44,848 nucleotides of DNA, from contig NC_069003.1 of NCBI RefSeq assembly GCF_001194135.2, forward strand, positions 197,412 through 242,259. Direction: 5' to 3'. Below the pieces are notes generated by a model. The model was not told the origin of the DNA. It saw nothing but the letters and a program-made list of their open reading frames with translations, and did not search any database. Below are positions 14,881 to 44,848 of the stretch, piece after piece. The DNA is from Octopus bimaculoides. Its lineage: Eukaryota. Each line of letters opens with the position of its first letter. The stretch's first letter is position 1. Both the position numbers and the translations under genes were made by a program.

Positions 14881-15619
14881 TATGTCCAGTGTTGCTTTGT
14901 TAAGCTATACACAAACCAACCAGTGGAGACAAGAATATATTTATCAAAGGTTTATTACTTTATGTACAAGAGGGCTTAAGTTGCCAGTTGAATTCAGATT
15001 CATTTAACATTCCATTGCTAACATTATTTTGTTTCCCTTGGTGTACAGCCTTATTTTAAAACAAATTCTTATTTGATTGGGGGTCTTACTTTTATGAAAC
15101 TTATTATCATTATTTTATTACTATTATTATTTTTAATACTCTTTGATCCTTTCAGAGTCGATCAAATAATTATCTGTCAATCACTAAATTCGATAACTTG
15201 GATTGTGCTCTCTTCTTGTAAATTGGAATAACTAATTAAATTCAAATAAGCCGACTCTGGATTGTTCAACTCCAAATGGAGCGAATGAAGAGGTGAAGGA
15301 AGTTATCTCCCTTGTCATAGGAATATTTAAAAAAGTCTGCTTTTTCTGATCTCTGGAAAATGACGAAACCTAAGAATTCACTTTATTCTTTTACCTTTTT
15401 AATTGTTTCAGTCATTAGATAACGGCCATACTGGAGCACCACCTTGAAGACTTTTTAGTCGATTGAATCGACCCCAGTACTTTTTTTTTTTTTAAGCCTG
15501 GTAATTGTGGTGGGTTGCGGGGACGTAAACACCAAGACTAGTTGTCAAGCGGTGGTTTCACACACACGCACACAGATACATATCTATATATGTGTATGTA
15601 TTTTTGCATCGAAGGTCGG

Positions 15620-15676
15620 CGATTGTCGTACGCTGAAGAAGGGAAATAACCCTGAAACTCGAGTACGTACGTATCG
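15620..15676 (+). ncRNA. Type I hammerhead ribozyme, copy 1; predicted cleavage after GUA at 15665
   Basis: stem I cgtacg 15627-15632 / 15666-15671; CTGAAGA 15633-15639; stem II aggg-aaataa-ccct; GAAA 15654-15657; palindromic stem III ACTCGAGT; GUA triplet. Confidence 0.9.
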
Positions 15677-15970
15677 TAGATCAAGATAGGAAGGATAACC
15701 TCCCTTGGCAAATACAGACAGGACACAGAAGTGTGTCGATAGCCAGCTGGAGGAGATGTCCTCCTGGGGCTAAAAGCAACAGTAACATCCACCCTTCGGG
15801 GTCAGCCACATTTAAGTGGCAAATATACTTCACTTTATCGTGCAGTTACTGTTAATATCTCGTTCAGAGATTTAACATTGCTTGTTTTCAGTTTTTCGAT
15901 ATCAGTGAATAATTTCACTGGAAAAACTTATATATATTTGCCAAGGGATGCCTTTTGCATCGAAGGTCGG

Positions 15971-16027
15971 CGATTGTCGTACGCTGAAGAAGGGAAATAA
16001 CCCTGAAACTCGAGTACGTACGTATCG
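15971..16027 (+). ncRNA. Type I hammerhead ribozyme, copy 2; predicted cleavage after GUA at 16016
   Basis: identical in sequence to copy 1, exactly 351 nt downstream. Confidence 0.9.
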
Positions 16028-16374
16028 TAGATCAAGATGGGAAGGATAACTTCCCTTGGCAAATACAGACAGGACACAGAAGTGTGCCGATAGCCAGCTG
16101 GAGGAGATGTCCTCCTGGGGCTAAAAGCAATAGTAACATCCACCCCTTGGGGTCAGCCACATTTAAGTGGCAAATATACTTCACTTTATCGTGCAGAGAG
16201 AGAGATGTCGGGCTTCCTTCACTTTCTGTCTACCGAATCCAAACACAAAGAATAGAAGATACTTGCCTAAGTGGAATTGAACCCGCAACCATGTGGCTGT
16301 GAAGGGAGCTTCTTACCACACGGCCAATCCTGCGCCTTTAGATTGTTTTCTTTGATAAAAGATCCTACACACTG

Positions 16375-17100
16375 TAGATATTTCTTGTCATCTAACTTGG
16401 ACACAATGCAGCAATGGATTGCTAACTGGCAGCTCAAACTGGATGTTGACAAGTGCATCACGATACATTTTGTGGAGTAAAACCTGGAATTTTACCTTTT
16501 CCTTACTCTACACCAGAAAAATTTGCTGGTGAGCATCACCTTGGTGTTATTGTTAACAACGATCTGCTTCGAATGAACCGTGTTTCTAAAATCGTCAAAA
16601 CTGCCGAAAGTGTATTAACATCACCCAGTAACACCTTTGTCAGCCACTCACCAGCTATCTCTAGAAAACTACAAATAGCTATAAAGCATCAACCCTTAAT
16701 TTTGTATCTCCAGTCTGGGACCCCTATCTTGTTTAACCTAGTGATCTGCTGGAGGTTGTCCATAGACGTACAATAGACATTGGTCACTGCCATTTGCTGA
16801 ACATTTTGCTTCTTTGGGTAGGGACAAACTAAAGTTGAAAGGAGCCCACGAAATTATTCACCATCTTTCCAGCGATAACTTTGGCCAACCTTTGAAATCA
16901 ATTCTTCTTTTCAACTCGTGGACATGCTTATATAATTAAATTAAAAACAGAAATAAAAATAAAGCAGTAGAGCACCCATGATTTTCAGAAACATTCTTTC
17001 ATGTTCAGAATTGTCGAAGCATGGAATAAACTCCCCGTGTCAGTTGTTACATATCAGGGCACATCACCTTCAAAAATTTCATGTTGTATTCAGTGTGCTG
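16375..17100 (+). mobile_element. CR1-like LINE 3' remnant (reverse transcriptase C-terminus)
   Basis: LDTMQQWIANWQLKLDVDKCITIHF; HLGVIVNNDL..VSKIVKTAE; terminal FRIVEAWNKLP motif; many stops and frameshifts. Confidence 0.8.
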
Positions 17101-18494: not shown

Positions 18495-18900
18495 AATTCC
18501 AGCTCGTTCTTCCTCCTTCTAGACACCTATTTGAACATAACATAGCATCTGAGGAATTTAGTCAATATGAGAAATATCTGGAATACTATCAAAAATAATG
18601 CAATGGTATTTACTCTGTTTCACTTCATCGATGACTTTCTTTCTCACTTGATCTCTCAAGGCGTTCACCAATTCATTCTGAATTTTTGGCGAGAGACAGG
18701 GATTTGTAAACTTATCAATTTTTACTTTCACCAAATGTTCACATAAAACTGGGTCGAAATTTCCAATCAGTTGAACAAGCTCCAGAAAATTTCTTTCATT
18801 TTCAATTGCCTTCTCAACTCGAATATCTTCTCTATGGCCTCGTAAAGCTAGGTTTTGCTTAGCAAGAAACCTGATTATATCCAAGAATCTAGTCAGGAAT
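18495..18900 (-). mobile_element. hAT-superfamily transposase fragment (ZMYM1/DUF4371-like)
   Basis: FLAKQNLALRGHRE..NFLELVQLIGNFDPVL..LSPKIQNELV..KYHCIIFDSIPDISH; a possible element end lies near 19065-19115. Confidence 0.85.
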
Positions 18901-20566
18901 TGCTTCCATTTTTGTTTTTCATTTTCAACGAGAGTTTGTTGTTCTTTGTCTTTTACTGATGATAAATTTAGATTTTAAGGAAATTTTAATTGCTACTTTA
19001 CATTATTAAAGTCTATAATATTTATACTGCATTTTTATTAATGATATATTAATACAAATAAATTGCGCCGCCCGGGAGGTGGATCGCTCTCCCCGCCCCC
19101 TCTTGGTACGCACCCAAGTATCATATGGATCCTGGTTGGGAACCACCGTGGGATTCCATCAAGGATGTAAGGATTGCAAGGAGGGCTTCTTAACCTTATC
19201 GACACACAGACAGACAGACTATTTAACCAAAGACAAACTGTTTACTCTTTTTATCAAACAACAAACTGAGACTTCATTTAACAATTCACAACAATTATTC
19301 CACCGTTTATTGTCATTTTCTAAAATTTATAATGGTTTTTTTGTTTTCCTCGTCATCGTCTACTTTCTCTCATCTTTTCTCCTCCTCTTTCTCATCATGT
19401 CTTCTTCTTCTTCTATTGTCCAGCTTTGTCATTCCCTCCTCTTCCCCTCTACCGTCCATTCATCTATCACAATGTGTGTGTGTGTGTGTGTACATGGAGA
19501 ATCAAATATCACTGTCAAGTCAGACTGCCTGTCCGTGTGTCTCTCTGTTTATCTCTCCTTGAGACAGCCATTATAATAATGGGCGTGAAAAGATTTAGTA
19601 AAGATGGAGACAGAGAGAGAGAGGGGGGTGAGGTGGACGACTGGTTTACAGTCCTTGTGTCTTTACAACGACACCAGCAGCTGTGGTGGTAATAAGAAAA
19701 GGGGAGTGGGGTGAGGGTGCTGAGATCAGGAATTGGAGGTTGTTGTTTAATCTAAGGTCATCCTTGATCCAGCTGACTTATAACCAAAGACATTTCAGCC
19801 GTGACCAGCCCCACTTTTTTTTTCCTGCGTGCAGGCAATCCTGGATTATGTTATCCAACGTGACCTTTTTTTTTTTTTTTAATGCAGTAGGGTGTTATTT
19901 GAGGAACAATTGGCTGCTACATCTATTAGGTTAAGATACTGCGATGAGGCTCACGAACTGGCAGAGATGTAGGAGGCGATGGTGGTGGTGATGGTAGACG
20001 TCGGATGAAGAGGAGTGGCAGTTGTGTGTGTGTAAAAAGAAGCCGACAATGAGATAACTGTGGAACTGTAGAAATGTGACTGGAACTTCGGGTCTAAATC
20101 CCAAGAACAACTAAAATACATTGTCGGGCAAACGAATAAACATATGTAAATAATATTTCTTCCTTCTTGGTGTTGAGTCTTCGATATTTACTGCTTACTC
20201 CAACGCGAGAACCAAAAAAAAAAAAAAAAAGAAAACCGTTTAATATGCAACACAGGCAGTAAACAAAAAATAAAACAGAACAGAGTGGTGACTTTTAGTA
20301 GAGATGACCCGGAAGTTGTTCCTCTTCGATTATTATCGCAAACAGCAGTAGCTTTCTTTAACTGAATACACGTCGTTGATTGGTCGAAGTTACCCAAATA
20401 CGACAACTTTAACACGAAATAACTTCTAAAAGACCAAATTTTGTCAAAAATGTTCAAAGTAAACCGTGTTCTGCGTGAGACATTCCACCAGTATACGAAG
20501 TTTCAAACTGTTTAGTTAAAAAAGATTAATTAAAAAACCCGTGAGCCAAATTGAACAGATCCATGT

Positions 20567-34740: not shown

Positions 34741-36582
34741 ACACACACTCACACTCATGTTTTTCCTCTTTATAAATTCATCTTTTTGTCCGCCTCCTCC
34801 AACTACATATGATAAGAAAAAAAAAGTTATTTTGAAGGCGATATATTTGATACTTTCTAAAGAATTATCAAACACATTTAGCAAACATTAAAGGAACTAA
34901 ATTTCCTAAGAAGAATGAATATTCTTTCTAATTTTTGTCACAGTCAGCAATTTTGAGAAGAGTGATCAATTTTGATTTCATAAACCCCCAGTAGTTGACT
35001 GGTATTTATTTTATTGAAAGGCAAAGTTGATCTTGGTAGTATTTGAACTCAGAAAGTAAAGAACTGGAGAAAATGCAGCATGCTAATGGTTCTGTCAGCT
35101 CCCTGCCTTTAAGAAGTGTGAATAATGACAAAATATTTCACAATCTGAAAACTGTTTCCCCATTGCTTGCTTCATGTTCTTGCTTGATGGGGATCGGATC
35201 ATCCCAGGTTAGTGGTCCCAGAAAAGTTGTGTAGAGCCAACCAGGTCCACCTGCGCTCTCCATTGCTGGGGGTTCTGTACCAACCCATCTGCATGCATCC
35301 TTCATTGGAATCTTCAAAATTTTCTCTGGAATTCTGAAATTTCACCGAGGTTAAGAATTGTGACTCTAAAGTTATTAAATGAATGAATTTAAATTTATTT
35401 ACTGAAGGTTTTATGATTGCCAAAGGCAGTGTGGGTGTCAGTGGAGCTATGTAAATACAAATATTGTAATTATTCATGTAAGGGATGACACTTCTATGGC
35501 AGTTGTAGATTTGCTTTGATTTAATTGACATGAAGTGAAGGAAACGTTTAATTTTTCACTGAATAATTATTTATTGTTGATCATAACTTCATTTTAGTTG
35601 TTTTAATTGCACTGGAGTAACTAGGACTATATTATTTAATGTTTTCTTTTCTCCATTTAAGATGGTAGGATGTGTGATTTGAAAGAGAATTGGCTGCTAT
35701 TTTTGCTGTCATGTCTACCAGCCATATAGAAGCCTTCTCAGTGATTCAGTTGTTTGTATAATTTGTCATTGAATGCTTCAGGAATGTCTTGGAAAATTTC
35801 AACAGGGAAATATCAATCAGAAAGTTAGGTTTTTAAAACTTTTTAGAGCAAATACACAGTAATCAATAGCAACATAAAAATTGGTATTTCATAGTGTGTG
35901 TGTGTGTGGGTGGGGGTGGGGGGTAGCTCGTGATCTCTTTAAGCTTGCTAGAAGTTGGTTCATGAAGTCACTTCTTATCATTACTCTTGTTATTTATTAC
36001 ACATTTTCTTTTTATTTTTATGTCAAAAACTGGGACTGTTTTTCTCTATCTACAATGATAAGTATGTCTACTACTACTCCTATTACTGCTACTACTACCA
36101 CCTCCACCACCACCACCACTAGACTGCTACTACTTATAATAATGGTTTCAAATTTTGGCACAAGGCCAGCAATTTGAGGGGAGGGGTTAAGTCAATTGCA
36201 TCAATCCCATTGCCCAACTGGTACTTAAGGATGAAAGGCAAAGTCAAAGGTCTGAAATTAGCCTGTACTTGATTCGTACTCTATTTTATTGCCATTTTCA
36301 AGGATGAAAGGCAAAGTTNNNNNNNNNNNNNNNNNNNNNNNNNNNNNNNNNNNNNNNNNNNNNNNNNNNNNNNNNNNNNNNNNNNNNNNNNNNNNNNNNN
36401 NNNNTAAGGATGAAAGGCAAAGTCAAAGGTCTGAAATTAGCCTGTACTTGATTCGTACTCTATTTTATTGCCATTTTCAAGGATGAAAGGCAAAGTTGAT
36501 TTCTGTAGGATTTCAACTCAGAATGTAAAGAACCACAAGAACTCTCTCCCTCAACGCATTTCTTCTGAGACTTACTACCCTC

Positions 36583-36624
<42 letters not shown>

Positions 36625-36769
36625 CAGTTACTCGTTGACTTGAAGGACCCATGAATGCTGTTGGTTCAACTACTTTCTCTTCACCAAATAAATAAAATAA
36701 ATTTAAAAGAGGTTATAGGTTCATTTCCACCTCCTGGACATTGATTTTTATCAATGTTGGTCTCAAGGC

Positions 36770-36975
36770 TGGCACAACTGTCTGCACCTCAGGCAAAATG
36801 CTTTTTTATGCCAGTCTGTCTTTACATTTTGAGTTCAAATTCCACCGAGGTCAACCTTGCCTTTCATCTTTCCAGGGGTTGATAAAATAAGTACCAGTTA
36901 CATACTGAGGTTGATGGGATTGTCTAATCCCCTCTCCTCAAAATTGCTGGCCTTGTGCCAAAATTTGAAACCAAT
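36770..36975 (+). mobile_element. tRNA-derived SINE (family B)
   Basis: gagttcaaattccaccgaggtcaaccttgcctttcatc..ataagtaccag..ggccttgtgccaaaatttgaa. Confidence 0.75.
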
Positions 36976-37120
36976 ATTCATCTTGTTCTTTCTCTCTCTT
37001 CTTCTTTCTCTCTCTTCTTCTTTCTCTCTCTTCTTCTTTCTCTCTCTTCTTCTTTCTCTCTCTTCTTCTTTCTCTTTCTCTTTCTCTCTCTCTTCTTCTT
37101 TCTCTTTCTCTCTCTCTTCT

Positions 37121-37153
<33 letters not shown>

Positions 37154-37220
37154 TCTTCTTTCTCTTTCTCTTTTAGTGCTGCTGTTATTGTTCTCTCTCT
37201 CTTTCTCTGTTGAAATCCAG

Positions 37221-37384
37221 GAAACTTGCCGGAAAGACACTGTTTATAACTGGTGCAAGTCGAGGAATTGGCAAATACATTGCTGTGAAAGCTGCTCGTG
37301 ATGGTGCCAATGTGGTTATTGCTGCCAAAACTGCTGATCCACATCCAAAACTTCCAGGAACAATCTATACTGCAGCAAAAGAAG
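37221..37384 (+). CDS. HSDL2: HSDL2 coding exon 2 (Rossmann TGxxxGIG)
   Basis: tccag|..|gtaaca; [54 protein letters not shown]. Confidence 0.95.
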
Positions 37385-37440
37385 GTAACACCTATCCTCT
37401 GTCTCTTCGTTAAACTGTGTGTGTATGTATATATACATGC

Positions 37441-37473
<33 letters not shown>

Positions 37474-37487
37474 TGAAAATATAAATG

Positions 37488-37554
<67 letters not shown>

Positions 37555-37639
37555 CAAACATAAAAATATAAACAAACATATATATATATATAACACACAC
37601 ATATAAAATTATATACGAACATATATATAAACACATACA

Positions 37640-38330
37640 TACCATGAGTATTGAAAAAGTAGGTACAACTTTTTTTATTTGCTAGCACAAGATGTTCAAA
37701 TTGCCCGTTCTCCTCTCTACAAAGCTACAACCATTTCTATCACAAGCAATGCTGTTGTCCCATCATTTTTTAAAATCCTTTTTGGAAATTTCAGGTCTGC
37801 CCCCTATTCTACCCGCTTCTTCACAATCTCTCTCACCTGATTTGTGTCATCAAGTTATTGTCCCTGAATCATACAGGTGAAAATCAGAGAGATGCTAGAT
37901 CCATGCTTTTTGGTGCAGGGGTGGATCGGGGGAGAGGCACTGAGCAGCCCCAATTTGCTGATTGCTTGATTTGTTGTCAAGCATACGTGTGGCCAAGCAT
38001 TCTCATGGTGAATATGAGATATTTTCAGATTCTTCTTCCAAATGGCTTCTCTAAGCTTTTTAAGTGTCTCAATGTACCTTTCAATGTCCACAATACAACC
38101 ATATTCCAGAAAATTAAGGAGAATGTTCTTGTAATCCTCCAAAACAGTCACCATGACTTTCCATTTCAATCCCTGATCTCCTTTTTAAGGTCTGGAGACA
38201 AACTGTGGCACCATTCCAACATTTGTTTTGCTATCATAAAGATAGACCCTCATTTCATTCCCTACCACCAAGTCAGAAAAAAACTTGTCTTCCTTAGCTT
38301 CAAATACTTCTAGTTGATAAGAGCAGACTA
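37640..38330 (-). mobile_element. Decayed mariner element in HSDL2 intron 2
   Basis: RYIETLKKLREAIWKK..HHENAWPHV..TNQAISKLG on the minus strand. Confidence 0.75.
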
Positions 38331-39370
38331 TCGTCCTTGAGATATTTTATCTAATGATTGAATATCAAGCATTCTGTAGTGTATTTGGTAAAATTTGGTA
38401 ACATGGTTCCTTAGTAACTCATAAATATTTGCTTTGAATCTCAACAATCGGTGTTTCTCTATTCTGCCTTATGTTGGGGATTCTAATGTCTAATATTGTA
38501 ATATTTAATATTAGTTCTAAATCTGGTTAACCAGCAACAAGGAAACTACCCCGAATCTCTTTCATAATACTTGTTATATTTATCCTGTCTTTGTGAACCA
38601 TATCATCATTGATTATAGATTTCCAATGAGTCAGTCATTGCTTCATTGCAGTTTTGGTTGGAAGAATGACAAGGGAGTGTCTGTGTAACTCTGCAATAAT
38701 ACCACAAGATATTTTTGTTTAATGTACAAAATTAGCAGCTGTTTCTTGTTGATGGATGTATTTTTTTAACTACTGCATTCTCTTTCTCTCTCTCTCTCTC
38801 TCTTTCTCTCCCTCTCGTGTGTATCATAGGCAACAGCTTTTCTTTCAATCATGTTATATTGAAGACAATCTCATGTTCAAATTCCATCTTTTCGAGGAAA
38901 GAGAGTTTCCATATTTTCTTTTAAGTTATTTATGTTTAATGTGAAACACTAATGTCCGCATATTTACCAATCTTTCATGATTTTCCTGATTTTATTTCTT
39001 CAATGAAATGTTAAGAACCTTAGGAATAAAATTGGTCCAAATTAAACATAAAAGACTTAAAAGGAAATGTTTTTGTATACCTTCCATTTATTAAATTTCC
39101 CCAAACATCAATCAAATCAATCAATCAATCAGTCAATCTGAGTTTATAATAGAATACACTACTTGCTTCCCCCTGCCCCCCGACCATGGTACCAAGGTGT
39201 ATGATTGATCCCAAGACCACTTGTTGCTAAAGAAGCTTCTTAATCATGGATCCATGCCTGTTTGTGTAAAATGTGTGTAAAGGATCTCAGGAATGTCCCA
39301 GAGTCTTCGATCCATGGATTTAGGGTTAACAACAAACTTCTAAAGTCTGGTTTCTTTTTTGTTCGTCCAG

Positions 39371-39584
39371 TTGAGGAAGCTGGAGGGAAAAGCCTGCCGT
39401 GTATTGTTGATATCCGTTATGAAGACCAAGTGCAGAAAGCTGTGGATGAAACGGTGAAGACATTTGGAGGCATTGATATCCTTGTCAACAATGCCAGTGC
39501 CATTAGCCTTACTGGAACTCAGCAAACACCAATGAAGAAATACGACCTCATGATGGGCGTCAATGCCAGAGGGACTTACCTTTG
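39371..39584 (+). CDS. HSDL2: HSDL2 coding exon 3
   Basis: tccag|..|gtttgt; (V)EEAGGKSLPCIVDIRYEDQVQKAVDETVKTFGGIDILVNNASAISLTGTQQTPMKKYDLMMGVNARGTYL(C). Confidence 0.95.
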
Positions 39585-39623
39585 GTTTGTATTCCCTCTC
39601 CATCTCTATCTCTGTCAACCTTG

Positions 39624-39669
<46 letters not shown>

Positions 39670-40363
39670 CATCATCATCATCATCGTTTAGGCCGTAAAA
39701 TCCATTGTTGATCGGGTAATTACTTTTACTGTTTCTTGGGCCGAGAAGCTAGAAAAATGGGTTTATCATATTGTAGAGGGATAGTTTTACGGAATCCAGT
39801 TGACTGCGACGGCACTGAAAAGGCAGCAGATCAAGTGGATCATCACTGTTCATATAGAAAAAGCATTGCACGTTGTCGTGTGTTGGTTTGGTGGTCGTTT
39901 TTTTATTGATTAGGATTATCAGTAACTAATAGTGAAATGAAATGACAAATGCTGTGTCCTGTCAGTGAGATTTAGGTTTACTTGTCCTGTCTGTGTGTAT
40001 AAAAGAAAAACATGTCATAACCGGAGTAGAAAAAAAAGATGGCTTTGTGTACAAACTTCTGTTTGTTCTTCAAGTTGCAATGCAGCAACGTTTAATGTTT
40101 GGCCTTGATTTTTATCAATGCTCATGGCAAAAGAAAGAAAGTGGGATAGGAACCTGTAAGGGCTTAAATTTGAATGGGACATTAGATGGTACAACTACTT
40201 GTATGTGAGGAATGAAGATGGTGTCACGTTTACCACAACCAGTGAGAATTTTTGCTTCAATGCAGTTCGTCATCAGTTTTGTGTTCGATTAGTGTTGCCT
40301 CCCTTGAACCATTTACTTTCACTTTATGGGACAAACAAACACACAAATGGACAATTTCTCTCT

Positions 40364-40394
<31 letters not shown>

Positions 40395-40400
<6 letters not shown>

Positions 40401-40660
40401 TAGCACTATAGCCTGGCTTTGCACGGGATGANNNNNNNNNNNNNNNNNNNNNNNNNNNNNNNNNNNNNNNNNNNNNNNNNNNNNNNNNNNNNNNNNNNNN
40501 NNNNNNNNNNNNNNNNNNNNNNNNNNNNNNNNNNNNNNNNNNNNNNNNNNNNNNNNNNNNNNNNNNNNNNNNNNNNNNNNNNNNNNNNNNNNNNNNNNNN
40601 NNNNNNNNNNNNNNNNNNNTGTAGAAACGGAGAATTTCGTTTATATTGTGTGTCACTCAC
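40395..40660. mobile_element. Possible Helitron-like non-autonomous element end, mostly in a gap
   Basis: actagc..cctggctttgcacggg start following (TA)n; the rest is N. Confidence 0.3.
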
Positions 40661-40689
40661 TAAAAAGAGGAAATTTTAAAAATCTGTTG

Positions 40690-40731
<42 letters not shown>

Positions 40732-41173
40732 CCCCCCCTCTCTCTCTCTCTCTCCCTCTCTCTCTTTACACCGTCGCTAGAAGGGAACTTAACTCAAGCT
40801 CCGACTGTTAGGAAGGAAGAAAAAAAAAATAAATGGTTGATTCCGGGCATTTTCGACCATGCAGAATCCATTGGTTGTAGTGAAACTGAAAGTGTTTTGC
40901 TACAGAACAGTTGTTTTTTTTAATAAACTTTAGAATGAATTATTGCAATGTAACCATCTTTGTGGTATCATAGCTAAAGGCAGTTATCTAAGATGTAACT
41001 TCCTCTGTAACACCATAACTAATGTGTTGTCTGACATATACTGTCATATATCTGTGTAGATGTAAATATGGGAAAATCTTTCATCTCTAAGGACAATATT
41101 AATTACTTCCAAAAATTATTCTAAAATTCTTGTTTTCTAAATTTTTCTTTATATGATTCTACCTTGTTTCCAG

Positions 41174-41277
41174 CTCCAAGGTCTGTATCCCTTACTTGAT
41201 GAAGTCGGAAAACCCTCACATCTTGAATCTTAGCCCTCCTCTAAACATGAACCCGAGATGGTTTACCAATCATGTGG
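41174..41277 (+). CDS. HSDL2: HSDL2 coding exon 4
   Basis: ttccag|..|gtacgt; SKVCIPYLMKSENPHILNLSPPLNMNPRWFTNHV. Confidence 0.95.
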
Positions 41278-42344
41278 GTACGTATCCCTACTTTGTTGTG
41301 GCTGTAATACCCTTGGTCCACTCTCATTTCAGCCATCTTTTTTACACATAAAGCATTATCCAGTATTTATCCTCTCCTTATAAGTTAGTAAGATGGGATT
41401 GAAGGAGGAGGATAATTATTTCAGGGACATTTCTTTCTAATATCCATCCAATAGGATATCATAGCTATTGCCTATAGATTCTTTACTTATTCTCTTCATG
41501 ACCTCTGACCAAACTCATCAATAATTGTATCAGTCATAGGTATTTTCTCTCCTATGAACCTGCTGTGTGCCTGCATGTCTATATTTGACTTTCTTTTCTA
41601 TTTGTTATAAGATTAAAATACTTATCCTTGTACATGCGATTCAGCCATTTGAAGATTCTTATTTTCTGGATTTCTAGTTGAACAGTTTTATATTTACTGT
41701 TATCAGTTTCCCTAATTCCCTTGTCATCATCTCCTAATAGCAGCATCTGCACATTTACTGGTGGCTTTTACATGTATCTGGTCTCTTTTGTTAGCTATGA
41801 ACTTGTAATTTGTTATGTTCAATAAATAAGGTAACCAGACAACTGTGAAACAATGTAACAAACTGACAAACCTCTTTATGAACCAGCAATCAATATTCCT
41901 TGTGAACTAACGGACACATCCCGACTTCACTGTAAACTAAACATGAATTTCACTCACCTCTGACCTCACTTGGATCATTACTGTTTATACTTTACTTGGA
42001 CCAGTCTATCTCTTGCAAGGGTGTGTTGTCACTCTCATCACAACAGAACTTATCTCAGTTTACCACATGTAAATGCTAATGTGCCTGCATAGAGAAGCGA
42101 CTGTTTAGTTAAAAGTATGTGGTGTGTATAGTTTGGTGTGAAGATATTGACATGTGTATGCTGATGTATATATATTTCTATATGCCAGGAACAATTGAAA
42201 TATTTGTATATATATGGCTGTGCAAGAGTGGTACATATGTGTGTAGACTTGTATATGTGTCTGTGTACAAGTATTTATATTAGAATAGAAATTATGTAGT
42301 GTATATATGTGTTTGCTTTTCTATAAATGTATGTATACAGAGGC

Positions 42345-42670
42345 AAAGTGGCTGAGTTCCTTTCAAGCGTTGGGCCTCACGGAGGCAATGACCAAGACCT
42401 TTGGCATTATGCCATGCTTGAGAAGAAGACCCATCAAGCCGAGCAAAATCACAGCCATGGCAGATGCCAGTGTTATGCAAATGGAACCGGTGCTGGTGGG
42501 ACATAAAAGCACCCATTACACTCTGAGTGGTTGGCATTAGGAAGGGCATTCAACCGTAGAAACCATGCCAAATCAAACTGGAATCTGGTGCAGCCTTTCC
42601 AGCTTATCAGCCCTGGTCAAACCGTCCAACCCATGCCAGCATGGACAACAGACTTTAAATGATGATGTTG
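42345..42670 (+). mobile_element. RTE-tailed SINE or LINE 3' end with (GAT)n tail
   Basis: ends ccaacccatgccagcatggacaacagactttaaatgatgatg, homologous to the 5890-6102 tail. Confidence 0.55.
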
Positions 42671-43177
42671 ACATATGTATGTGTGAGCGTAAATATGATG
42701 GATGACCGGTGAGGGTCCAGCAATTTGTTGCCAAACAACCTCCTCCTGCACAGAGAATTTCTTTTCAGTGAGACCAAATGTTCGTCTTGCCACGCATTGG
42801 CTCCTTTTCGCTCCATCAAATCAATTTAGTTAAGATGTTTAATTGATATTATGAGCAGCTTCCACTGCTTTGAACTTCTACAATAAAACAGCATGGATTT
42901 ACGTTTTTGTCAGCTTTAATTATGCAAACAAAACCATTAATTAGTGCAATTATCCTTACACTAACTTTATATGAGTGTGGTTGTGAAGTGAGAACGAGTG
43001 CATTCAAACTGAAATACTCAAAGTTTTCCTTCTTCTTGTTAAAAACAACACAAAACACCTTTCAACGATGAACTTCGTTGAGTTTTATTGTTTTCTTTTT
43101 GTTCATTTTGAAATTGTGTTTCTTTTGTAAACCTCTTTACACTTTTTGTGCACCAAATATTCTCTGTTCTTTCACAG

Positions 43178-43279
43178 CATACACCATGGCCAAATATGGT
43201 ATGTCTATGTGTGTTCTGGGAATGTCTGGTGAACTCCAGTCTCATGGAATTGCTGTGAATGCCTTATGGCCCAGAACCG
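43178..43279 (+). CDS. HSDL2: HSDL2 coding exon 5 (catalytic YxxxK); gene continues beyond the window
   Basis: tcacag|..|gtaaga; (A)YTMAKYGMSMCVLGMSGELQSHGIAVNALWPRT. Confidence 0.95.
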
Positions 43280-44019
43280 GTAAGATTATCTTCTCTCACA
43301 CCTTCATTTTCTACCTCATTCGCTTTCTCTCTGCCCGTCTCTCTTATTCTTTCTCTCTCTCTCTGCCCGTCTCTCTCTCTCTGCCTGTCTCTCTCTCTCT
43401 GCCTGTCTCTCTCTCTCTGCTTCACTTTCTCTCTCAAAGTGTCTACTTCTCTTCTCTCTTGTAGCATGTGTCTACACACACACCAGTGAAATTCTATAAT
43501 AATCCTTTCTACTAGAGATGCAATGCCTGAAATTTGTGAGGAGGGGTTAAGTTGATTACATTGATCCCACTGCATAACTGGTACTTATTTAATTAACCCC
43601 AAGTAAATTGTGATTGTGTTGATAATATCTATAAAAATCATAAGATTTATTGTGAATATTCAAATGAGGAATTTGCTTCGTTTAATTTTATTTTAAGAGA
43701 ATAAATATTTTTCTTTTGAAAGTTTGCATTTCATCATTTTGTAAAAGCACCGAGAAAATTGGTAGAAGTTAAACTAAAATTATCTTATGCCATATTTCCA
43801 TATATTACCCCATGGTGGCAAAAGTACCAAAGTTACCTATCATATGATAGGCAACACACTAGCATGTGTCTGTGTATATATATGTCTATTAAACAAAATG
43901 AGATAACAAAGCCAAGGATGTGAGGAGTTTTCAGGACATTTATAAGGAAAAAGATATCTAGTTTTACAGCTGTTTCTGGGATACTATGGATATCCCTTAT
44001 AACTATATATATATATATG

Positions 44020-44175
44020 GTGGTGATCTGGCAGAATTGTTAGCACACTGGGTGAAATGCTTGGTAGTATTTTGTCTGTCTTTAAGTTCTGAGTTCAATT
44101 TTGTCTTTCATCCTTTCAGGGCTGATAGAATAAGTACCAGTCATGCACTGGGACTAATGTAATTGACTTAAATTC
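44020..44175 (+). mobile_element. tRNA-derived SINE (family B)
   Basis: ggtggtgatctggcagaattgttagcacactgggtgaaatgctt..gagttcaatt..aataagtaccag. Confidence 0.75.
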
Positions 44176-44848
44176 TCTTGGGTATGAGTATATAACCCCC
44201 CCCNNNNNNNNNNTGCATCCATCTGCCAAGACATGTTGAACTGGTGTGGCAGAGTTGGCTCATCCAATCAGCGTGATCGTGAGCTCAAATTCATGGCCTC
44301 CAACATCAGACCATCGATGGTGGACAGAACATTCTGAGGCCTTCATCCTGCAGCTGACTGAACATGGACAATCCAATCAAAAATTCATATATGTATGTGC
44401 ATTTGTGTGTGTGTATATATATAACGAAGTGTCAGCACAAAGCAGTGTATAAGTACAAGCAGAATTATATATATATATATGCATTTTTTTTTCCTTAAGG
44501 TTTTCAGGTTCTGGGTATATATAAATAAGAAATCCATTCTAAATTATCTCAATCTCTTCTCCGCTGACATACTACGACAAAGTCTCCAAGATGCAGATAA
44601 GATAGAGATTTTTATTTATTTACGGCCTCAACATCTCATACCTTCTGCGCTTTAGTCTGCTCGCTATTATTTATCTTGTTTCTCTCCATGAAATTCAATT
44701 GAATTCAGTTTTTGTCTTAAATTCATACTTATTCATTTTCTAAGCTTCCTAAATTCATGCTACTTATATATTCTATTCACCTAGGTTTCATTGCTGTTTT
44801 AAAAATTACGATTTATGCATTGTTGTCTCTCAAATATTTAAAATCTAC

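Follow-up and report, generated by a model that had tools for sequence, protein, structure and literature searches.

A tandem array with type I hammerhead motifs inside an Octopus bimaculoides SINE, probably a copy of a non-LTR retrozyme

We analyze a 44.8-kb stretch of the Octopus bimaculoides genome (hereafter, "the window"), in which a short array of a non-coding 351-bp repeat lies on the plus strand between the two parts of an older, tRNA-derived SINE. Each repeat unit carries a complete type I hammerhead motif, and the array is probably a copy of a non-autonomous non-LTR retrozyme. The array, the RNA monomer predicted from it, and its two flanks are the following:

15602-16196, plus strand: entire array, 1.7 tandem copies of a non-coding unit of 351 bp (98% identity, period 351)
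15666-16016, plus strand: predicted 351-nt RNA monomer, with cleavage after 15665 and 16016 (from the repeat search and folding)
15400-15601, minus strand: left flank, the 3' part of the host tRNA-derived SINE, ending in (CA)n(TA)n and collinear with the SINE copies at 31421-31503 and 33630-33749
16197-16340, minus strand: right flank, a AGAGAGAG run and then the tRNA-like head (5' part) of the left-flank SINE (matched to other SINE heads)

The array and its probable insertion site

The array is 595 bp long and consists of one full unit (15602-15952) and a truncated second one (15953-16196), which together amount to 1.7 units. Aligned start to start at a distance of 351, positions 15602-15845 and 15953-16196 are 98% identical, with 6 transitions in 244 nt, or an inter-unit divergence of 2.5%. 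The positions of unit 1 that differ from unit 2 (15688, 15700, 15736, 15780, 15795, and 15797) all lie outside the hammerhead region, and 5 of the 6 fall on unpaired positions of the predicted RNA fold (P ~ 0.04, a post hoc comparison). The period of 351 bp is absent from the TRF output; a repeat search of the window did recover the array. That search found no terminal repeats in it besides the tandem units themselves. Assembly gaps (N runs) stand beside microsatellites near 21.0, 28.37-29.05, 34.4-34.7, and 40.4 kb of the window. Tandem arrays may have been collapsed in the assembly, so that the 351-bp array may in fact differ in length from what is assembled here.

The 351-nt monomer has a GC content of 42%, and the longest open reading frames of the array encode 84 and 71 amino acids, both on the minus strand. 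A search with the 71-aa minus-strand frame and with a five-frame chimera of the array found no relatives among 5.8 billion protein clusters, which also cover assemblies built from public sequencing runs. With frames of at most 84 aa and no relatives in this collection, we rejected the reading of the array as a protein-coding element. A preliminary description, made from the letters before the source was disclosed, had proposed a tandem pair 351 nt apart in 15602-16196, had seen no evident protein coding, and had taken the DNA to be from a cephalopod; the comparison of the units and the frame search bear out the first two points, and the source is indeed Octopus bimaculoides.

The two flanks belong to one SINE. 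On the left, 15519-15601 aligns with 31421-31503, which is part of the 3' portion of the element; on the right, 16270-16340 aligns with two SINE heads (28178-28248 and 31918-31988). Between the two parts, the copy at 31330-31990 has a (CA)n(TA)n simple repeat that leads into ...ATATATACGACGGGCTTC; the borders of the array within its own host SINE read ...ATATGTGTATGTA on the left and AGAGAGAGATGTCGGGCTTCC on the right. As a single SINE is split by the array at the internal (CA)n(TA)n, the 1.7-mer looks like an insertion into the central microsatellite of the element. The ends of the array do not coincide with the predicted cleavage sites: one lies 64 nt upstream of the first, the other 180 nt downstream of the second. 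No target-site duplication is recognizable at the array borders. Penelope-like elements (PLEs) have a bias toward microsatellite targets, which blurs such duplications (PMC8557442), and by analogy the position of the array in a SINE microsatellite fits this bias. The host SINE copy is old, being 74-82% identical to the other copies in the window. A tRNA scan found no tRNA in the SINE heads, from which we take it that the heads are too diverged. In a separate copy of the SINE (31330-31990, minus strand), the central microsatellite is expanded by 164 bp of (AT)n and also holds some 160 bp of sequence unrelated to the element; this part of the SINE seems to be a recurrent target of expansion or insertion.

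No gene model overlaps the array site. Within 10 kb on either side of a bHLH open reading frame at 25211-27103, the only called genes are the bHLH gene itself and an HSDL2-like gene. The bHLH gene is a single exon of 630 aa, resembles Olig/BHLHE22 (PF00010 in its orthologues), and carries a (TTC)24 run encoding poly-Ser in addition to long His/Gln runs; its closest relatives are a 416-aa model in O. vulgaris and a 631-aa model in O. sinensis named 'protein enabled homolog'. The 630-aa frame has an exact match on chromosome CM046623.1 of the O. bimaculoides assembly GCA_001194135.2. The HSDL2-like gene occupies approximately 32650-44848, with adh_short and SCP2 domains in its product and exons visible, e.g., at 39262-39600 and 43078-43300. 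An ABHD-like exon is found at about 2740-2912. A relic of a hAT/ZMYM1-like transposase lies at 18561-18974 on the minus strand (DUF4371, Pfam E = 7e-8), 2.4 kb from the array. When selected neighboring open reading frames were compared with Pfam, this DUF4371 relic was the only match, and no reverse transcriptase (RT) or GIY-YIG frame was found in or adjoining the array, nor did these frames reveal a PLE in the window; two pieces that look like RT (16271-16773 and 29899-30378) had no Pfam match.

Hammerhead motifs and predicted RNA folds

Both units contain the string CTGAAGA-AGGG-AAATAA-CCCT-GAAA-CTCGAG-TA (15633-15665 and 15984-16016), for which 0.01 matches are expected by chance. The parts of the hammerhead in each unit, all on the plus strand, are the following:

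15620-15676: hammerhead 1, type I (from sequence reading, pattern match, descriptor, and folding)
15620-15623 and 15673-15676: helix I extension of hammerhead 1, CGAU paired with AUCG
15627-15632 and 15666-15671: helix I of hammerhead 1, CGUACG on both strands, 6 bp
15633-15639: core CUGAAGA of hammerhead 1
15640-15653: helix II of hammerhead 1, AGGG/CCCU with loop AAAUAA
15654-15657: GAAA of hammerhead 1
15657-15664: helix III palindrome ACUCGAGU of hammerhead 1, with A17 at 15665
15971-16027: hammerhead 2, with the same sequence as hammerhead 1 and A17 at 16016

The conserved core is complete and the three helices of a type I hammerhead are present in both units (C3 U4 G5 A6 A7 G8 A9, G12 A13 A14, A15.1-U16.1, and A17), as the preliminary description had stated and as pattern match and descriptor both recovered. 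Helix I is open, so that the 5' and 3' ends of the hammerhead lie in it, and an internal loop (UGU/U) separates it from the CGAU/AUCG extension. Helix II consists of 4 bp (one A-U and three G-C) closed by AAAUAA. Helix III has only 2 bp (A-U and C-G) and a UCGA loop, which together form the palindrome ACUCGAGU. The motif departs from the commonest consensus in having A at position 7, A-U instead of the usual G-C at 10.1-11.1, and GUA rather than GUC as the cleavage triplet. Such departures are tolerated in hammerheads and may lower activity. The cleavage sites that had been proposed, after A15665 and A16016, are right for the main register; a second register that had been missed lies 4 nt downstream because GUAC is repeated (15666-15676 and 16017-16027). 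It passes the descriptor with predicted cleavage after 15669 and 16020, a helix III of 2 bp with an 8-nt loop 3, and a weaker helix I of 5 bp.

We assessed how readily such a motif arises by chance using a descriptor that required the core, a helix I of at least 4 bp, a helix II of at least 3 bp, A15.1-U16.1 plus at least one further base pair, and H17. On either strand of the 44.8-kb window, it matched only the two hammerheads of the array, both on the plus strand, and a viroid-like arrangement with ribozymes in both polarities was rejected on this ground. In 500 dinucleotide shuffles of the window, the descriptor found 0.002 matches per shuffle, and no shuffled window had a match with a helix I of at least 6 bp and a helix II of at least 4 bp. 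As the two copies are duplicates of each other, the hammerhead counts as one independent event, and even so counted the motif is far beyond chance.

The Rfam hammerhead models do not recognize it. Across the whole window there was no match at the gathering score, and a scan with the Rfam Hammerhead_1 model, which the preliminary description had proposed as a check, left the motif unmatched even at E ≤ 10, as did the other hammerhead models, on an 801-nt slice (15500-16300) and an 81-nt slice (15610-15690). The only Rfam matches in these slices were chance-level ones below threshold, to miRNA, U2, and BsrC. Twenty metagenome loci bearing hammerheads with the same helix III were likewise without an Rfam match at the gathering score; since the models missed these as well, the non-match at the array is weak evidence, their sensitivity for the subtype being doubtful. 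Membership by Rfam thus fails, a result that we ascribe, with some doubt, to low sensitivity of the models for this hammerhead subtype. Annotation by covariance models can miss the octopus subtype.

In metazoans, the canonical type I hammerhead has a helix I of 6 bp, a helix II of 4 bp, and a helix III of 1-2 bp with a small palindromic loop (PMC4209133), and these ribozymes act as dimers in tandem repeats (Cervera and de la Peña 2014, PMC4209133). By sequence, the octopus architecture is the canonical one, point by point.

Folding of the circular 351-nt monomer gave a minimum free energy (MFE) of −120 kcal/mol, against −79.7 ± 5.0 for shuffled sequences (z = −8.1); none of 200 shuffles was as stable, and 64% of the bases are paired. 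In the predicted fold, helix I runs outward into a long closing helix that includes a perfect 14-nt pairing (15701-15714 with 15935-15948), and this helix would hold both ends of the cleaved RNA together. For the 64-nt hammerhead domain alone, the canonical fold has −12.1 kcal/mol, with helix III itself contributing +0.9, and the MFE of −19.2 kcal/mol belongs to another, inactive pairing. When two domains are folded together, the MFE structure is a double hammerhead in which helix III grows to 8 bp and the helix I strands are exchanged; its −44.7 kcal/mol is better than 2 × −19.2. In the 595-nt transcript of the array, the double hammerhead in cis has −211.0 kcal/mol, only 0.6 above the MFE of −211.6, versus −201.4 for two single hammerheads, which is 10 above the MFE. 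The suggestion that stem III is poor as a monomer and able to pair between copies is thus upheld by the calculations. The predicted folds favor the double hammerhead over two single ones, although a requirement for the dimer is not certain. They also fit the published idea that multimers are cut and the monomeric circle is spared (PMC4209133; PMC6155905).

Identity, age, and activity of the element

Non-LTR retrozymes are tandem repeats of 150-450 bp, present as dimers to multimers, with type I hammerheads and a GC content below 45-50% (PMC7229834). They lack an LTR, PBS, and PPT, give rise to highly self-paired circular RNAs of about 170-400 nt, and co-exist with PLEs; in the mussel Mytilus galloprovincialis, a family of 350-390 bp has been described (PMC7229834). 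In a 2026 preprint, retrozymes are argued to derive from the pseudo-LTRs (pLTRs) of PLEs. PLEs have been reported in Octopus species (PMC8557442), and Penelope elements have been recently active in O. vulgaris (PMC13282606). At the octopus locus, a hammerhead is present in every unit of a 351-bp tandem repeat (1.7 units), the GC content is 42%, there is no LTR and no frame above 84 aa, and the predicted monomer is highly self-paired (z = −8.1). An autonomous PLE would have an RT and GIY-YIG frame between its hammerhead repeats; here the units abut. We consider it likely that the array represents a non-autonomous, non-LTR retrozyme in Octopus bimaculoides with a type I hammerhead in each unit, and the retrozyme proposed in the preliminary description is supported by the size and GC content of the unit, by its strong self-pairing, and by the lack of coding. 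Against it stand the facts that one locus was seen and that it has no recognizable target-site duplication, as well as the difference between the predicted MFE fold of the monomer and the active hammerhead fold.

If the array is a retrozyme, its life cycle may be pictured as follows. In a plus-strand transcript of at least two units, the hammerheads would pair via the palindromic helix III to form a double hammerhead; alternatively, each could fold alone, aided by loop contacts. Each ribozyme would cleave after its GUA triplet, at A15665 and A16016, and release a 351-nt RNA with a 5'-OH and a 2',3'-cyclic phosphate. The long closing helix would bring these ends together for circularization, most likely by the host tRNA ligase. 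The circular or multimeric RNA would then be copied, probably by a Penelope-like RT/endonuclease that passes more than one turn round the template, and insertion at simple-repeat targets would leave tandem arrays with arbitrary ends, e.g., a 1.7-mer. Transcription, cleavage, circularization, the ligase, and the Penelope-like helper are all inferred here by analogy with the retrozyme family.

A BLAST search found no other copy of the unit in the 44.8-kb window, nor did 46 kb of DNA from O. vulgaris and O. sinensis yield one (about 91 kb of Octopus sequence in all). The loci of these two species, which were reached via the bHLH gene, end at the equivalents of 17.8 and 18.3 kb of the window and thus stop about 1.6-2.1 kb short of the equivalent of the array site. 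That site, some 9.6 kb upstream of the bHLH gene, would fall to the immediate left of 429099 in O. vulgaris (OX597836.1) and of 10263579 in O. sinensis (CM016881.1). As to age, a paper on O. vulgaris repeats implies a clock in which a Jukes-Cantor (JC) distance of 0.065 corresponds to about 18 My (PMC13282606). On that clock, and if the units were identical at insertion, their divergence suggests an insertion roughly 3.5 My ago, with a wide error. This is less than the 13-33 My quoted for the split of O. bimaculoides and O. vulgaris (PMC13282606), and an empty site would be predicted in the sister species.

The exact hammerhead pattern had no match in viral contigs or in metagenome contigs. 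A looser pattern scan of the metagenome contigs returned 47 with ...CUGAUGAU(N11-14)UGAAACUCGAGUA..., that is, with the same helix III and triplet. These 47 share the exact GAAACUCGAGUA module and have U.U at 10.1-11.1, a short helix I, and, in some cases, inverted pairs. Apart from these unrelated hammerheads, the scan gave only chance matches. Examples, from contigs L013-L123, are the following:

L098: 31-62
L029: 3249-3280 and 1127-1158
L023 and L069

The L098 motif is found 49 nt 3' of an open reading frame of 713 aa that has YRDDG and, toward the C-terminus, a Cys-rich part and a GIY..YIG-like end; in L029, there is a frame with a weak RVT_1 match. RT-like frames adjoin at least two metagenomic GAAACUCGAGUA hammerheads, although Pfam does not confirm their domains. 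From their sequences, these loci look like PLEs with minimal hammerheads, and when they are read in this way, the helix III module is tied to the Penelope-like class.

Three other readings of the array deserve consideration, and the one that we find hardest to set aside, while still judging it unlikely, is that of a dead relic, in which the hammerhead is intact by descent and the locus, perhaps with its entire family, has ceased to be transcribed and to move and persists as a fossil in the SINE. The small size of the array, its truncated second unit, and the 2.5% divergence of the units would agree with this, as would the age of the host SINE copy (74-82% identity to the others), the single copy in about 91 kb of Octopus sequence, and the lack of related frame fragments among the protein clusters searched, those from assembled public sequencing runs included. 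That both hammerheads are identical and complete despite 6 substitutions elsewhere argues the other way, if weakly (the chance of this is about 0.09 for an 80-nt ribozyme), and the divergence is itself low and would correspond to roughly 3.5 My for units that were inserted as identical copies. In any case, the relic reading bears on the present activity of the element, not on its nature.

The nature of the element is at stake if the array is instead a pseudo-LTR pair or a deleted remnant of an autonomous PLE and not a separate non-autonomous family. Hammerheads with a small palindromic helix III do occur in the pseudo-LTRs of PLEs (PMC4209133), the 2026 preprint derives retrozymes from these same pLTRs, and the helix III module of the octopus hammerhead adjoins RT-like frames in metagenome contigs. 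We nevertheless hold such an origin to be improbable, given that the units abut directly with no internal region, that no RT or GIY-YIG frame was found in or beside the array (among the neighbors tested, only DUF4371, 2.4 kb off), and that the hammerhead is of the canonical kind, with a 6-bp helix I plus internal loop and a 4-bp helix II, rather than the minimal kind of PLEs. Far less probable still is that replication slippage duplicated a stretch of DNA in which a hammerhead-like motif had arisen by chance, without any RNA function. Such an origin would account for the lack of an Rfam hammerhead match and for the single locus; the descriptor statistics from the 500 dinucleotide shuffles (0.002 matches per shuffled window, none with helices so long) led us to reject it, and it would also leave to coincidence that the hammerhead sits exactly where an RNA with a self-pairing z of −8 closes on itself and that its architecture agrees point by point with the family consensus (PMC4209133).

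Returning to the retrozyme reading, we found in full-text searches of the literature no detailed account of hammerheads or retrozymes from any cephalopod, octopus included; 235 Rfam Hammerhead_1 hits are listed, but not discussed, in the genome paper on the giant squid (PMC6962438). With retrozymes already known from molluscs and the hammerhead motif on record for a cephalopod, the octopus family looks like an undescribed member of this class. A bolder version, which we regard as doubtful, is that of an undescribed and recently active cephalopod family whose A10.1-U11.1/A7/GUA variant escapes Rfam, which makes 351-nt circles and inserts into SINE microsatellites with the aid of PLEs. If it were true, Rfam-based annotation of cephalopod genomes would miss the family, and abundant 351-nt circular RNAs could arise in octopus tissues.

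Retrozymes are of interest as one of the few animal sources of abundant, ribozyme-made small circular RNAs, and their mobility has so far been inferred. Cephalopod genomes abound in SINEs and Penelope elements, and an octopus family would add this group to the known hosts of retrozymes. With the array inside a recognizable SINE, its ends and simple-repeat target can be read directly, and sister species could date the insertion and reveal the empty site. The array leaves the current picture of retrozymes unchanged and is, in this respect, a fairly ordinary find.

Comparison with known systems

The closest parallel is with the metazoan non-LTR retrozymes (Cervera and de la Peña 2020, NAR 48:5054), which likewise have a type I hammerhead in each short tandem unit, a similar unit size, low GC content, no LTR or open reading frame, and a highly self-paired predicted circular RNA. 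Examples are found in Mytilus galloprovincialis (350-390 bp), Acropora millepora (220-240 bp), and the axolotl (about 330-350 nt). With the mussel retrozymes, the octopus array also shares a mollusc host whose genome holds PLEs, those of octopus being known from the literature. It differs from the metazoan retrozymes in its octopus-specific sequence, in being a 1.7-mer only, and in the A-U at 10.1-11.1.

A further parallel is with the classical type I hammerheads of satellite DNA, those of newt satellite 2 and presumably also of Schistosoma Sm-alpha, to which the preliminary description had likened the loop II and stem I bulge geometry. Common to such hammerheads and the octopus motif are a 6-bp helix I that leads through an internal loop into an extension, an A-rich loop 2 of 6 nt, and a helix III so short that its palindromic loop permits pairing into a double hammerhead (PMC6155905; PMC4209133). 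From both of these systems the octopus hammerhead differs in sequence and host. With the minimal hammerheads of PLE pseudo-LTRs, the likeness is in the palindromic helix III, the presumed dimeric action, and a GAAACUCGAGUA module identical to that of the metagenomic hammerheads. Unlike the octopus motif, these minimal hammerheads have a longer helix II with an unpaired base at its start, their helix I is short and lacks defined loops, and they flank an RT-EN frame of about 3 kb.

Plant LTR retrozymes and viroid-like circular RNAs are more distant. The former have type III hammerheads, LTRs, a PBS and PPT, 4-bp target-site duplications, circles of 600-1000 nt, and high GC content; the latter are RNA replicons with ribozymes in both polarities, whereas the octopus array has them on the plus strand only. 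What the proposed octopus cycle would share with both is that multimers self-cleave to unit-length, self-paired circles.
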